From Macrostomum lignano (lineage: Eukaryota): 64,000 nucleotides of DNA. The stretch's first letter is position 1, and each line of letters opens with the position of its first letter. Made by a program: the position numbers and the translations under genes. Under the pieces are notes generated by a model. That model searched no databases. It was not told the DNA's origin and saw only the letters and a program-made list of their open reading frames with translations. The stretch spans positions 62,001-126,000 of the forward strand of contig NIVC01000350.1 of NCBI GenBank assembly GCA_002269645.1. Reading direction: 5' to 3'. This document shows, piece after piece, positions 23,764-32,200 of this stretch.

Positions 23764-23951
23764 TCAACATCTGCGACTTTGCCCGCCCCGCTGCTCTCGG
23801 TGCACATCGAAGCAGGCCAGGTTCTCCCCTGTCAGCGGGTTGCCCGGCACACCGTTTGGGGACGATGGAGAGCGGAGGCTGGAACGCTGCTTGCCGCCGA
23901 GGCTGAGGGTGAACTGCTGGCAGCCCTCGCCTGTCACCGGGTTGCAGCCAC
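23764..23951 (-). CDS. NPxTG-repeat gene, exon 8 (terminal): [11 protein letters not shown]...[12 protein letters not shown]...SRRC*
   Basis: Acceptor ctccag|GT at 23951, phase 1. Two motif copies. TGA at 23766-23764. Confidence 0.72.
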
Positions 23952-23967
23952 CTGGAGTTGGAGACGC

Positions 23968-24727
23968 CTGTCTGTCTGTCTGTCTGTCTGTCTGTCTGTC
24001 TGTCTGTGTGTCTGTCTGTCTGTCTGTCTGTCTCTCTGTCTGTCTGTCTGTCTGTCTGTCTGTCTGTCTGTCTGTCTGTCTGTCTGTCTGTCTGTCTGTC
24101 TGTCTGTCTGTCTGTCTGTCTGTCTGTCTGTCTGTCTGTCTGTCTGTCTGTCTGTCTGTCTGTCTGTCTGTCTGTCTGTCTGTCTGTCTGTCTGTCTGTC
24201 TGTCTGTCTGTCTGTCTGTCTGTCTGTCTGTCTGTCTGTCTGTCTGTCTGTCTGTCTTAGTGTCTGTCTGTGTGTCTGTCTGTCTGTCTGTCTGTCTGTC
24301 TGTCTGTCTGTCTGTCTGTCTGTCTGTCTGTCTGTCTGTCTGTCTGTCTGTCTGTCTGTCTGTCTGTCTGTCTGTCTGTCTGTCTGTCTGTCTGTCTGTC
24401 TGTGTCTGTCTGTCTGTCTGTCTGTGTCTGTCTGTCTGTCTGTCTGTCTGTCTGTCTGTCTGTCTGTCTGTCTGTCTGTCTGTCTGTCTGTCTGTCTGTC
24501 TGTCTGTCTGTCTGTCTGTCTGTCTGTCTGTCTGTCTGTCTGTGTTTCTGTCTGTCTGTCTGTGTCTGTCTGTCTGTCTGTCTGTCTGTCTATCTGTCTG
24601 TCTGTCTGTCTGTCTGTCTGTCTGTCTGTCTGTCTGTCTGTCTGTCTGTCTGTCTGTCTGTCTGTCTGTCTGTCTGTGTTTCTGTCTGTCTGTGTGTCCG
24701 TCTGTGTGTCTGTCTATGTGTCTGTCT
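23968..24727. repeat. (CTGT)n microsatellite, about 760 bp
   Basis: Tetranucleotide run; source of the VCLS and TDRQ ORFs. Confidence 0.98.
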
Positions 24728-24777
24728 CTCAGCCTAGCCTCCAATATTTAATTTTCCCGATAAGCAGCTCATCTTAC

Positions 24778-24864
24778 CAATCGGTTGAGTCAGTCGGTGC
24801 TTCTCTTCAGCGCTAATCGCGAATCCCTGGCAGTTCTCCCCCGTCTGGGGATTTCTGACTGAAT
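24778..24864 (-). CDS. NPxTG-repeat gene, exon 7 (87 nt): [29 protein letters not shown]
   Basis: ctctgcag| ... |gtaaga; phase 1-1; open frame. Confidence 0.8.
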
Positions 24865-24950
24865 CTGCAGAGTCACAGTTGTGCCATTTTCAGAATTTCA
24901 GCTTTTACGCTGGCCATGCTGTAAATATGGAGACCCTCGAAAATCTCATA

Positions 24951-25033
24951 TCCAGACTCCCCACTATCTAGTACCTCACGTAAAGATTCTAACCTAAATT
25001 CTGTAACCAATTCTGTAAGATTCTCGTTCTAAA
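24951..25033 (+). repeat. 83-bp dispersed direct repeat, copy 2
   Basis: Matches 23301-23383. Confidence 0.9.
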
Positions 25034-25039
25034 AACTTT

Positions 25040-25260
25040 CACTCTAGAGACTCCCATGCTGCAAAATGTCACTCTAGAGACTCTCGGGCTGCAAAATGTC
25101 ACTTAGAGACTCTTGGGCTGCAAAATGTCACTCTGGAGACTCTTGGGCTGCAAAATGTCACTTAGAGACTCTTGGGCTGCAAAATGTCACTCTGGAGACT
25201 CTTGGGCTGCAAAATGTCACTTAGAGACTCTTGGGCTGCAAAATGTCACTCTGGAGACTC
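25040..25260. repeat. 29/30-bp alternating array (GGGCTGCAAAATGTCACT[TA/CTG]GAGACTCTT)
   Basis: Starts at the exon-6 donor on the minus strand. Confidence 0.9.
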
Positions 25261-25264
25261 TCAC

Positions 25265-25432
25265 CACTTGAAATGACGGCGGGTTGTCTCTCCCGAAATT
25301 CGGCGCAGTTATAGCTGTAAGTTGCGCAGTTTGCCCCTGTCACCGGGTTGGTCGCAACGACCCGCCGGTCGGAACTGGTGCCCACACTGGGGTCACTGGT
25401 GACGCAATTCTCACCTGTCAGCGGATTTCCAC
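25265..25432 (-). CDS. NPxTG-repeat gene, exon 6 (168 nt): [10 protein letters not shown]...TNPVTGANCATYSYNC...
   Basis: accag| ... |gtgaga; phase 1-1; matches part of track ORF 25221..25487. Confidence 0.8.
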
Positions 25433-29688: not shown

Positions 29689-29945
29689 TTGTAGTGCTCA
29701 TGCGAGCCCAATTTATATGTACATCGGCCTTGCGTACAATTCATGCACTTCAAGTGCGGCGATTCTCCACCCCCCACTCTGGTGGCGTGATTTTATTCCA
29801 TAGTCTGAAAATAAATAAATATCGATCAGCCCACCTAGCAGGGCTTCACCTTTCGTCTCAGCACACTCCGGCTCTTCTTACTATAGCCATTACACTTATC
29901 AACCAGACCTAAACTCCCAGCCAATCGCAACCCCTCCAATCTCAC

Positions 29946-30038
29946 CATTGGTCAGCGGCCTCTGCCTGCCAGCATATCCGTATATCGGATCCCACTCAAC
30001 TCCAAAATCGCCACTCCCAGATATGACGTCTCTATGAG
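29946..30038 (-). CDS. NPxTG-repeat gene, exon 3 (93 nt): SHRDVISGSGDFGVEWDPIYGYAGRQRPLTN
   Basis: cccatttcag| ... |gtgaga; phase 1-1; degenerate motif DPIYG; both junction codons are sense. Confidence 0.7.
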
Positions 30039-30334
30039 CTGAAATGGGAAATTAGTTGCTGCGCAAATTTGTTCTTTTTCGTTTTTTTCTCTGCACCTGC
30101 CCACCCCCGTCCCCCTGAAAACACACATTGTTGGATCCGTGTCTTCCCAGGCCGCCCGTTGGGCCGCAGATCTTCGGGATAATCCGCAGAGCCGCCACTC
30201 AGATTCAGCGGGCTGTCAGGTGCGAGTCGGAGAGGGTGGATAAAATTATGGGTTTCACTGGCCCATTCTCTATGCTCTTGAATTTATGGGAACTCTAAGT
30301 AGAGATTTTAGATATTTTTTTGAGTAGCTCTCTT

Positions 30335-30955
30335 GGGAAACCGCAAATGGGATCTTCGGTAACCAACAGATGGCATCTTCGGTAAGCAACAGATGGGATC
30401 TTTTGAAACTACAGATGGAATCTTTGGAAACAACAGATGGGATCTGCGGAAGCTACAGATCGAATCTGCGGGAACTACAGATGGGATCTTTGGAAACAAC
30501 AGATGGGATCTGCGGAAGCTACAGATAGAATCTGCGGAAACTACATATGGGATCTTTGGAAACCACAGATGGGATCTGCGGAAGCTACAGATCGAATCTG
30601 CGGGAACTACAGATGGGATCTTTGGAAACAACAGATGGGATCTGCGGAAGCTACAGATAGAATCTGCGGAAACTACATATGGGATCTTTGGAAACCACAG
30701 ATGGGATCTGCGGAAGCTACAGATAGAATCTGCGGGAACTACAGATGGAGTCTTCGGAAACCGCAAACGGGATCTTTGGAAACCACAGATGGGATCTTCG
30801 GTAACCAACAGATGGGATCTATGGAAACTACAGATGGGATCTTCGGTAACCAACAGATGGGATCTTTGGAAACTACAGATTGGATCTGCGGAAGCTACAG
30901 ATAGAATCTGCGGAAACTACAGATGGGATCTTTGGAAACCACAGATGGGATCTTG
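30335..30955. repeat. 22-bp array with a 66-bp (3-unit) higher-order period
   Basis: AGATGGGATCTTTGGAAACAAC / AGATGGGATCTGCGGAAGCTAC / AGATAGAATCTGCGGAAACTAC cycling. Confidence 0.92.
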
Positions 30956-31003
30956 GAATCCCCAAATTTGGGAACCGGCAAAATGACCCCTCGCCTGACT
31001 CAC

Positions 31004-31087
31004 AGTCCTTCCTTTTCGAATCCACCCGAGAGAACAGCTTCACCTCGGCTCCAAGATTTCCCTCTCCCAGAATGGGATTCCGATCGT
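31004..31087 (-). CDS. NPxTG-repeat gene, exon 2 of those found (84 nt): DDRNPILGEGNLGAEVKLFSRVDSKRKD
   Basis: cttgcag| ... |gtgagt; phase 1-1. Confidence 0.78.
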
Positions 31088-31226
31088 CTGCAAGTTGAAG
31101 AAATGTTTGGTTACCTTTTTCAGTTGACAATTGGAAATTTTAGGTTGAAGCATTCAAAATTTTAGCAGATGAAGCCATAAGAGCTTGGGCAATCAAAAAC
31201 ACCCTTGCCTCATACTACTAAGTAAG

Positions 31227-31930
31227 TAGCTAGCAGGGGACAACAGGGGGCTAGCAGGGGACAACAGGGGGCTAGCAGGGGACAACAGGGAGCTAGCAAG
31301 GGACAACAGGGGGCTAGCAGGGGACAGGGGGGCTAGCATGGGACAACAGGGAGCTAGCAAGGGACAGAGGGCTAACAGGGGACAGGGGGCTAGCAAGGGA
31401 CAGGAAGCTAGCAGGGACAACAACAGAGGGCTAGCAAGGGACAACAGGGGGCTAGCAAGGGACAACAGAGGGCTAGCGGTGGACAGGGGGGCTAGCAGGG
31501 GACAGGGGGCTAGCAGGGGACAACAGGGGGCTAGCAGGGGACAACAGGGGGCTAGCATGGGACAGGGGGGCTAGCAGGGGACAGGGGGGGGGGCTAGCAG
31601 GGGACAGGGTGGGCTAGCAGGGGACAGGGGGCTAGCGGTGGACAGGGGGCTAGCAGGGGACAGGGGGCTAGCAGGGGACAGGGGCTAGCAGGGAACAGGG
31701 GGCTAGCAGGGGACAACAGGGGGCTAGCAGGGGACAGGGGGCTAGCAGGGAACAGGGGCTAGCAGGGGACAACAGGGGGCTAGCAGGGGACAGGGGGCTA
31801 GCAGGGGACAGGGGGCTAGCAGGGGACAACAGGGGGCTAGCAGGGGACAACAGGGGGCTAGCAGGGGACAGGGGGCTAGCAGGGGACAGGGGGCTAGCAG
31901 GGGACAACAGTGGGCTAGCAGGGGACAGGA
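31227..31930. repeat. 18-21-bp G-rich array (GGGCTAGCAGGGGACA[ACA]GG)
   Basis: Tandem units with dense G3-G5 runs. Confidence 0.93.
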
Positions 31931-32071
31931 GGGGGGCAATGAGTAGAAAATAAAAAGCAAGTAAACGAGTCAGTCAGTTGAAGAAAACATTGAAACTACA
32001 TAAAACTGCATTGTCGCAGAAGTGAGAATTTCTCTCAGCATATTTTATTGTATTATCGCCCGCGCGCTCAC

Positions 32072-32200
32072 CCCGCTCTCGAGTGGCCCTTTTTGTCCGC
32101 TCCTGCTGATAGCCAAGTGTCAAACCGTTTTCCTCAGAAGGAGTCGCTGTCGCTTTCTTGTTGGTTAGGCCGGTGATGGGATTCCGATCCTGATCGATGG
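32072..32200 (-). CDS. NPxTG-repeat gene, most 5' exon found (129 nt): IDQDRNPITGLTNKKATATPSEENGLTLGYQQERTKRATRER
   Basis: ctctgcag| ... |gtgagc; phase 1-1; the start-codon exon was not located. Confidence 0.78.

Follow-up and report, generated by a model that had tools for sequence, protein, structure and literature searches.

Which protein is encoded by the string of small exons carrying Asn-Pro-x-Thr-Gly (NPxTG) motifs on contig NIVC01000350.1, and what would such repeats do? The exons lie on the minus strand of a 64,000-nucleotide stretch of this contig (assembly GCA_002269645.1, positions 62,001 to 126,000), the whole of which is called the window below, and coordinates refer to it unless another sequence is named. 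We here propose that the exons form a genuine gene of a family homologous to the Jupiter/JPT proteins, in which PPGG motifs are absent, the NPxTG modules are carried on symmetric exons, and the modules may contact tubulin. This explanation, taken as a whole, is held with moderate confidence.

Gene structure

The gene extends on the minus strand from an ATG at 32454 to a stop codon at 23764, and comprises nine certain exons and one candidate, exon 3b.

32439..32454, minus strand: coding part of exon 1 with the start, ATG AAC CGA TCT CGA G, donor GTAAAT, phase 1; encodes MNRSR and the first base of an Ala codon
32072..32200, minus strand: exon 2, 129 nt, phase 1-1, (A)IDQDRNPITGLTNKK...RATRER; first module, RNPITGL
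31004..31087, minus strand: exon 3, 84 nt, phase 1-1, DDRNPILGEGNLGAEVKLFSRVDSKRKD
30127..30212, minus strand: candidate exon 3b, 86 nt, PLNLSGGSADYPEDLRPNGRPGKTRIQQ, phase-1 donor T/GTGTGT; exposed by tblastn with homologues
29946..30038, minus strand: exon 4, 93 nt, phase 1-1, (S)HRDVISGSGDFGVEWDPIYGYAGRQRPLTN
28672..28776, minus strand: exon 5, 105 nt, phase 1-1, ERQHSRANPLTGDGVSSYEINHEMKTTNSGRRTES; best Macrostomum lignano match m7
25536..25637, minus strand: exon 6, 102 nt, phase 1-1, DAASNPLTGENCSSYSISEKLNEWRYKSGNKRVS
25265..25432, minus strand: exon 7, 168 nt, phase 1-1, double module, second part ...ATNPVTGANCATYSYNCAEFRERQPAVISS
24778..24864, minus strand: exon 8, 87 nt, phase 1-1
23764..23951, minus strand: exon 9, last coding exon, 188 nt including the TGA stop; double module
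23641..23646, minus strand: ATTAAA, a variant poly(A) signal read from the sequence, about 120 nt past the stop

A preliminary description of this locus had joined exons 2 to 9, and its eight exons, their AG/GT borders, phase-1 entry, the 318-codon join and all of the motifs it listed were reproduced when the borders were checked on the minus strand and the product was translated. An AG acceptor and a GT donor were found at all eight exons, each entered in phase 1, with lengths of 129, 84, 93, 105, 102, 168, 87 and 188 nt and donors, in order, of GTGAGC, GTGAGT, GTGAGA, GTACGT, GTGAAT, GTGAGA and GTAAGA. Splicing them yields 318 codons in one open frame, closed by a TGA at 23766-23764. With the start exon added, the nine exons give 972 nt without an internal stop, each of the 16 splice sites is canonical and keeps the phase, and the coding introns are in phase 1 in eight of eight cases (model without exon 3b).

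The exon pattern is far beyond chance. Translated in six frames, the window contains nine strict NP[ILVQ][TL]G matches, every one of them inside exons of the gene, whereas 200 shuffles averaged 0.54 matches and never exceeded 3. A looser module scan of the window found just two look-alikes outside the gene, and the exons of the gene ranked top when a family profile was run over all 2,870 six-frame open reading frame (ORF) fragments of the window. Judged by its sequence, the locus is a genuine spliced protein-coding gene.

The start exon had been reported as missing, but a putative one is present at 32454-32439. Its ATG is the first past an in-frame stop, has an A at -3 and is separated from exon 2 by an intron of 238 nt; the joined start reads MNRSR-A-IDQDRNPITGL and resembles that of the M. 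lignano homologue, MIKSRS, a match that is short. At the other end, an ATTAAA follows the stop by about 120 nt and a scan of the window found no additional modules downstream of exon 9 on the same strand, so that the gene probably ends at exon 9. Searches for a terminal NP(I/L)TG exon past the stop, for additional modules within the long introns and for an equivalent of the homologues' ELRKSLP exon also found none.

Two other types of repeat gene were considered and rejected. Schistosome micro-exon genes have most of their coding sequence in symmetric exons of about 6-36 nt and encode secreted products with signal peptides. The exons here (84-188 nt; internal ones 84-168 nt) are small but not micro-exons in the usual sense, contrary to the label given at first, and the N-terminus, MNRSRAIDQDRNP, has no hydrophobic signal; symmetry is the only shared property. 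LPXTG-anchored surface proteins are bacterial; they have a signal peptide and carry one C-terminal LPXTG ahead of a hydrophobic anchor, whereas this gene is spliced and eukaryotic, carries NPxTG about ten times and encodes no hydrophobic segment.

A family of flatworm and nemertean proteins

When the protein was searched against a collection of 5.8 billion proteins, flatworm proteins alone were matched. The best match was M. lignano BOX15_Mlig011212g1 (E=3e-60, 38% identity, full-length), and cestode and trematode orthologues followed at E values of 1e-33 to 1e-20. Mlig025565 and Mlig027991 are further M. lignano orthologues. The reach of the family was assessed by an exhaustive HMMER search with a flatworm profile, built from database sequences, against 1.84 billion representatives, which returned 50 proteins at E<=0.001. 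The members from outside the flatworms were Tubulanus polymorphus LOC141906064 (E=1.7e-30) and Lineus longissimus LOC135494118 (E=2.8e-17), both nemertean, and LOC109543605 (XP_019768966.1) of the beetle Dendroctonus ponderosae (E=8.3e-8). Two further matches, a prokaryotic-type repeat protein and a spirochaete DUF4215 protein, were evident false positives. The same search found no mollusc, annelid or other spiralian member, and the expanded family thus comprises Platyhelminthes and Nemertea, plus one beetle protein. The profile search proposed in the preliminary description therefore did recover relatives in flatworms, two nemerteans and one beetle, whereas its link to dipteran Jupiter was weak, as detailed below. 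The window protein also matches the Tubulanus protein directly (E=5e-19). Sequence comparison places the gene as a macrostomid-type member of a small flatworm/nemertean family. The novelty of the locus had been judged too high: databases already contain full-length homologues from many flatworms, and UniRef names one M. lignano entry 'Microtubule-associated protein Jupiter'.

M. lignano BOX15_Mlig011212g1 and the cestode and trematode orthologues, the latter annotated as 'surface protein PspC', are collinear with the window protein over the full length and 38-43% identical to it, and share with it all-phase-1 exons, two double-module exons and minisatellite-filled introns. They differ in being longer (400-470 aa, 13-14 coding exons) and in having an extra ELRKSLPxxDxETGxKNR exon and one or two terminal NP(I/L)TG exons, which are absent from the window gene. 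The uncharacterised Lineus and Tubulanus proteins match the window protein significantly and share the family elements RNPVLGEGDLGSEYDPVWK and terminal GNPLTGDNCKCFDISLEQR with it, but are longer (493-728 aa), and the Lineus protein has a JPT-type NPPGG head and alternative N-termini, both absent in flatworms.

Database names attached to the orthologues (PspC, SH2, MBD, Shugoshin, Ig-like) are artefacts, and a borderline PF22269 TagH_SH3-like match on cestode members, covering 17-18 residues, is spurious. In the literature on the Schistosoma mansoni orthologue label we found one mention, of Smp_055220.x being mildly higher in paired males, for which orthology is assumed from the shared label.

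Neodermatans (cestodes and trematodes) also possess a second, paralogous subfamily (P0028, P0029, P0034, P0037, P0057 and P0062) with several isoforms per gene. Its head, RDPITGLG / LRPHGGR / RDPIxGxGDFGREWDPIYKYDGR, is common to both subfamilies; 'DPITH' units replace the NPxTGENC modules, and several members have a long Pro/Thr/Lys/Gln-rich tail. In addition, the family profile matches residues 1387-1567 (E=1.5e-18) of the M. lignano UniRef entry A0A1I8I8J6 (P0044, 1906 aa), named 'Reverse transcriptase domain-containing protein', which is probably a chimeric gene model in which a retroelement was fused with a paralogue of the NPxTG family.

The protein and its modules

The product is 323 aa long without exon 3b and about 352 aa with it. 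It is rich in Ser, Gly, Arg and Asn, and consists of a string of short linear modules with about ten NPxTG-type units. Its head modules are, in order, RNPITGL, RNPILGEGNLG, (LRPxGRPGK) and RDxISGxGDFGxEWDPI, and seven units follow. In the family alignment the head reads R(D/N)PI(T/A)GLG, RNPIxxGxLG, (E/D)xLRPxxRP and RDPIxGxGDFGxxEWDPIxxYxGR, then modules; all of these motifs occur in order in the window protein, with RDPI reading RDVI, and the third of them needs exon 3b. The seven modules have the form N-x-x-(T/S)-G-E-N-(C/V)-x-(S/T)-(Y/F), and the series in the family ends with NPLTGxN(x)xCFD(I/V)xxExR.

Across 100 modules of the family, the consensus is (R/S)-N-P-(L/V/I)-T-G-E-N-(C/V)-x-(S/T)-(Y/F)-x-(V/I), in units of 14-16 residues such as SNPLTGENCSSYSIS. 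An aromatic residue stands at N+10 in 88 of the 100 modules, against a background of 5%. AlphaFold2, run on the family alignment with an orthologue, returned disorder throughout, with a mean predicted local distance difference test score (pLDDT) of 42.8 and a predicted template modelling score (pTM) of 0.16, and the protein is accordingly predicted to be intrinsically disordered. A sequence search of the PDB gave nothing usable with the single protein (E above 1) and zero matches with the family profile, and a Pfam scan of the window protein gave sub-threshold noise alone (DUF7043, 2C_adapt, conotoxin).

Exon architecture and its age

Introns are in phase 1 in all 13 cases in M. lignano, in all 12 resolved cases in Echinococcus and in all four in the beetle, and are located at module boundaries. 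One module, or in two cases a pair, per symmetric phase-1 exon is the architecture common to Macrostomum, Echinococcus and the beetle, and one module of Drosophila Jupiter conforms to it. The one-module-per-exon claim of the preliminary description thus holds for most exons, the exceptions being the double-module exons 7 and 9.

The exons of the window gene can be paired one by one with those of M. lignano. Exon 2 is collinear with M. lignano exon 3, VVERDPIAGLGLLG; exon 3 is 74% identical (tblastn) to M. lignano DSRNPILGQGNLGQEVNLFSRSE, and its best exon match is m4 (score 90). Exon 4 gives the strongest family-profile match in the window (38 bits, E=1.6e-10); it holds most of the invariant alignment columns, and is the most conserved element of the flatworm/nemertean family. 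Exon 6 is 62% identical (tblastn) to M. lignano SNPVTGENCDSYTVSDKLNEKHAKSGSKTPRG, and is also where the beetle Jupiter-family protein aligns. The double-module exon 7 is present in M. lignano (m9) and Echinococcus as well, exon 8 matches three 87-nt D-xxx-RNPVTG beetle exons in length and layout, and exon 9 finds its best match in m12 (score 143; tblastn E=1.9e-9).

Each window exon scores best against its collinear M. lignano exon (54-143), while exon pairs within the window gene reach at most 61, and both double-module exons occur in Macrostomum as well as in Echinococcus. This exon-for-exon match and the common double-module exons imply that the duplication long predates the split of the lineages and is not recent in the window gene; by sequence, the modules are ancient, and each exon has its orthologue in M. 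lignano. Growth by exon duplication, as originally suggested, would therefore apply deep in the family, not to this gene. The near-identical exons of the beetle gene, on the other hand, imply that exon duplication still operates in the wider family.

Because all internal exons are symmetric (phase 1-1), any of them could be skipped in frame, as had been claimed. The Lineus gene has 14 RefSeq isoforms, which are predicted models and differ by in-frame cassettes of one (N/D)PxxG module each, including a mutually exclusive pair; alternative M. lignano gene models lack the ELRKSLP exon, and schistosome paralogues have several isoforms. These predicted models suggest that in-frame skipping of modules occurs in relatives, and by analogy the window protein may have a valency that is adjustable by splicing.

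Candidate exon 3b

The eight-exon model overlooked the homologous candidate exon at 30212-30127. Exon 3b is collinear with the family module (R)NPxxLxG...(E/D)xLRPxxRPxK and contributes the family-invariant residues P78 and R93. Its best match is M. lignano m5 (score 54; other exons at most 24). It covers profile positions 101-129, directly ahead of the next exon at 130-158; its own profile score is 4.8 bits (E about 1.6 within the window), which is weak taken alone. Its length is 3n minus one base, and it is in phase 2 from either usable acceptor AG. Three readings of this deficit are possible: (i) a base was lost in the assembly, for instance in the CCC run at the start of the exon; (ii) the exon is frameshifted and skipped, which gives the exon set of the preliminary description; or (iii) splicing uses an atypical GA/GTCAGG donor that lies 4 nt downstream of the strong one of exon 3.

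Relationship to Jupiter and JPT

Likeness to insect Jupiter proteins had been proposed, and the RNPITG and GNPVTGEG motifs cited for it do exist: the 14 dipteran Jupiter proteins compared all carry RNPITGLGL and GNPVTGEGY without variation, directly before the terminal PPGGFSSGLW. Modules of the RNPITGLG/GNPVTGEG type (JUPITER model positions about 273-324) are carried by the window protein. Drosophila Jupiter (PF17054) resembles it further in being disordered and in the order of the two motifs, RNPITGLGL then GNPVTGEGY, against RNPITGL then RNPILGEG in the window protein; it also has many splice isoforms. It differs in having two NPxTG units instead of about ten, and in its N-terminal RPPGGGSSDIFG and C-terminal PPGGFSSGLW, both of which the window protein lacks.

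Direct comparisons with Jupiter failed or gave weak matches. The Pfam JUPITER model (PF17054) did not match the window protein even at E values up to 10, nor did it match other flatworm members or the nemertean ones; the gathering threshold is 27 bits, and the positive controls, JPT1 and the beetle protein (P0059), scored 33.6 and 31.9 bits, respectively. The JPT1 control sequence was validated by Pfam at that score. The PPGG motif is absent from the window protein, as the preliminary description had stated, and from all 29 family members checked, and no PPGG-type exon was found near the gene in any frame. Comparison of the flatworm family with the 14 dipteran proteins by hhalign gave a probability of 10.5% (E=0.003), which is weak; BLASTP of the window protein against Jupiter gave E values of 0.14 or worse, and adding nemertean sequences to the profile raised its score against Jupiter up to 17.6 bits only.

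As the direct matches are weak, the case for homology depends on bridge sequences and intron positions. The beetle protein passes Pfam JUPITER (31.9 bits) at model positions 273-324, which are the NPxTG part; hhalign gives it a probability of 79% against dipteran Jupiter and of 94.8% (E=4.8e-8) against the alignment containing the window protein, over the NPLTGENC peptides from exons 6 and 7 of the window gene. Its RNPVTG(Q/E)GVSSWDCK modules number four, the first three each on its own 87-nt phase-1 exon starting with D-xxx-RNP, like window exon 8; it differs in being 169 aa long, in that its modules are near-identical recent duplicates, and in lacking the flatworm RDPIxGxGDFGxEWDPI head. The second bridge is the start of Lineus isoform X6, MTSTTNSIGLNPDSRNSSRVLNPPGGRVSINLFGGG, which is 50% identical to the head of JPT1 over 62 residues (pairwise BLASTP), though Pfam did not recognise the X6 head in isolation. 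Finally, the Jupiter gene of Drosophila sechellia has a phase-1 intron two codons before GNPVTGEGY (position read by eye), as in window exons 7 and 9, and a phase-1 intron stands 2-5 codons ahead of the NPxTG motif in fly, beetle and flatworm genes.

Thus the proposed relatedness to Jupiter is upheld by the two bridges and by intron phase and position, and not by the Pfam model or by direct matches. The window gene probably represents a PPGG-less, NPxTG-expanded branch of the Jupiter superfamily that lies outside Pfam JUPITER as currently modelled. The flatworm family has lost, or never had, PPGG motifs. Vertebrate JPT1/HN1 and JPT2/HN1L are, like the window protein, small and disordered with repeated short units, and the (N)PPGGKxSxxF unit of JPT has the same spacing of Pro-2, Gly-5 and aromatic-11 as NPLTGENCxSY in the window protein. 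JPT1 and JPT2 are without NPxTG units, judging from the JPT1 control sequence and the description in PMC12773733, and the window protein is without PPGG; on sequence comparison, the relationship is at the level of motif and superfamily only.

Putative function and alternative explanations

In JPT2, repeated 13-residue NPPGGKxSxxF units bind microtubules, the minimal unit being the 13-residue LNPPGGKSSISFY, which is sufficient for microtubule localisation, and the taxane site in the lumen has been proposed as the place of binding (PMC12773733). The spacing of Pro-2, Gly-5 and the aromatic residue at 11 in the NPxTG module equals that in RPPGGGSSDIF, IPPGGFSSGLW and NPPGGKSSISF. Given the binding of the PPGG units of JPT2 and this equal spacing, we favour the reading that the window protein would be multivalent in binding microtubules or tubulin: its modules would act as repeated low-affinity contacts, analogous to the (N/R)PPGG...F units found in JPT2 and Jupiter, and in-frame exon skipping would vary the number of contact sites. 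A disordered, multivalent microtubule/tubulin binder with splice-adjustable valency seems to us, by this analogy, to have roughly an even chance of being the correct picture. It is attractive to speculate further that NPxTG and (N/R)PPGG are two versions of one ancestral tubulin-contacting peptide (P2...G5...aromatic-11), and that flatworms and nemerteans swapped PPGG for a ten-fold NPxTG array, giving a microtubule inner protein that is multivalent, perhaps luminal or ciliary, and has its number of contacts set by combinatorial skipping of phase-1 exons; this larger scenario is rather unlikely to hold in full.

The microtubule reading is challenged most directly by the idea that the gene is a true Jupiter relative whose NPxTG modules do other work, such as binding another partner, JPT2-like signalling by NAADP and Ca2+, or a nuclear role, with PPGG alone binding microtubules. 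Experimental mapping has assigned microtubule binding to PPGG(K)xS units only, and a strong nuclear signal was also seen when HeLa cells expressed Drosophila Jupiter (PMC12773733). PPGG is wholly absent from the flatworm members, and JPT2/HN1L also features in the NAADP literature. No publication on the NPxTG motif, and hence no function shown for it, was found in the literature searched. These points count against the microtubule reading; nevertheless, the modules keep the P2/G5/aromatic-11 spacing of the PPGG units and are the part of Jupiter conserved from flies and beetles to flatworms, and the disordered, slightly basic, multivalent repeat make-up is typical of a structural microtubule-associated protein. 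We consider another function of the modules unlikely, albeit the most serious of the alternatives. A more sceptical view is that the resemblance to Jupiter is short-motif convergence in low-complexity proteins and that the flatworm/nemertean family is an independent invention. It would explain why the direct comparisons (hhalign, BLASTP, Pfam) are insignificant and why the common unit spans just 8-14 residues or so, but would leave unexplained two independent bridges, the beetle protein being significant on both sides and the nemertean one joining a JPT-type head to a family-type body. It would also have to produce, by chance, the phase-1 intron that precedes the motif by 2-5 codons in fly, beetle and flatworm, the identical 87-nt module exons of beetle and window, and the same order of RNPITGL and NPxxGEG in Jupiter and in the window protein. 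Convergence thus appears very improbable.

The remaining alternative concerns the copy itself, which could be a paralogue that is decaying or not expressed, and so on its way to becoming a pseudogene, with a functional member of the family elsewhere in the genome. Several observations fit such decay and so tell against our interpretation: exon 3b, at 86 nt, cannot be joined in frame to the strong consensus donor of exon 3; counterparts of M. lignano exons m2, m13, m14 and one of m10/m11 are missing, including two terminal exons with the final NPITG; the nearly invariant P of RDPI is replaced by V; neither an identical nor a transcript-derived protein was found among the 5.8 billion proteins; and a degenerate retroelement lies 0.8 kb upstream. 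Set against these are nine stop-free exons (972 nt) with 16 of 16 splice sites canonical and in phase, the retention of nearly all family-invariant residues and a poly(A) signal after the stop. The damaged exon 3b could be skipped by virtue of exon symmetry, and its 1-nt deficit adjoins the CCC run and could be an assembly error. We therefore regard decay as improbable, and retain the interpretation of a genuine member of a PPGG-less Jupiter/JPT-homologous family.

Introns and neighbouring sequence

Tandem Repeats Finder detected arrays in the longer introns of the gene.

23968..31935, no strand assigned: intron minisatellites, periods 4, 30/59, 14, 73, 23, 18, 14, 42, 22/66 and 21

Each of the six introns of at least 400 nt has its own distinct tandem array of 0.2-1.1 kb, and the three short introns (238, 103 and 88 nt) have none. 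The introns of the M. lignano orthologue (L001 10000-20800) are likewise filled with minisatellites, of unrelated repeat units, and DNA-level matches of the window to M. lignano DNA are simple repeats only. Distinct minisatellites in each intron seem to characterise flatworm genomes of this kind throughout, and suggest a macrostomid source. One array, (CAGA)n of 760 bp at 23968-24727, ends about 17 nt from the acceptor of the last exon and is open in the frame of exon 9, creating an ORF of 326 aa at 23764-24744, so that a naive, ORF-based caller would extend the exon into the repeat.

Upstream of the gene, 0.8 kb from the ATG, a degenerate reverse-transcriptase remnant of the non-long-terminal-repeat type occupies 33300-35400 on the minus strand (RVT_1 at 34403-33891, E=8e-8). 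Stops and frameshifts disrupt it, and at about 34540-34740 it is interrupted by a block of GGCGGGCAA-type repeats. The minus strand at 36281-36410 has three CCAAT boxes in GCCAATCA(G) contexts, then GGCTATAAAA, and a short ORF with a GTAAGC donor at its end (MSLIIGYDFEIDSKKTLVGR) is found about 400 nt downstream; judged from its sequence, this region resembles a promoter and first exon belonging to a further gene on the minus strand. On the plus strand, two long ORFs at 47828-51332 match Pfam Glypican (E=6e-60 at model positions 3-304 and E=6e-10 at 301-425), which identifies, at the sequence level, a glypican gene with at least two large exons, 15 kb from the NPxTG gene. ORFs are open on both strands at 16407-18008, and one of them matches Pfam Extensin_1 (119 bits); it almost certainly reflects a tandem repeat whose translation is proline-rich, and not a gene. 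Rfam and tRNA scans of the window were empty.

Implications for the family

Jupiter and JPT proteins are widely used as microtubule markers and have been studied in cancer, and the PPGG unit is their sole mapped functional element. What is notable in the window gene is the ancient architecture of one module per phase-1 exon together with the complete replacement of PPGG by NPxTG; otherwise it is one more member of its family. NPxTG, the second conserved element of insect Jupiter, can be seen as an ancient exon-sized module that is able to exist without PPGG and was multiplied about ten-fold in flatworms and nemerteans, and the flatworm proteins offer a natural test of its role. The misleading database names (PspC, SH2, MBD) on the orthologues of parasitic flatworms are corrected at the same time. 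The family also provides a clean example of a disordered repeat protein whose all-symmetric phase-1 gene structure has been kept since before the divergence of flies, beetles and flatworms and permits in-frame variation of repeat number. The restriction of the expanded family to flatworms and nemerteans, if it is not an artefact of search sensitivity, could bear on the proposed grouping of these two phyla, and, if NPxTG and PPGG do descend from one ancestral tubulin-contacting peptide, the expansion could be a shared derived character of Platyhelminthes and Nemertea.

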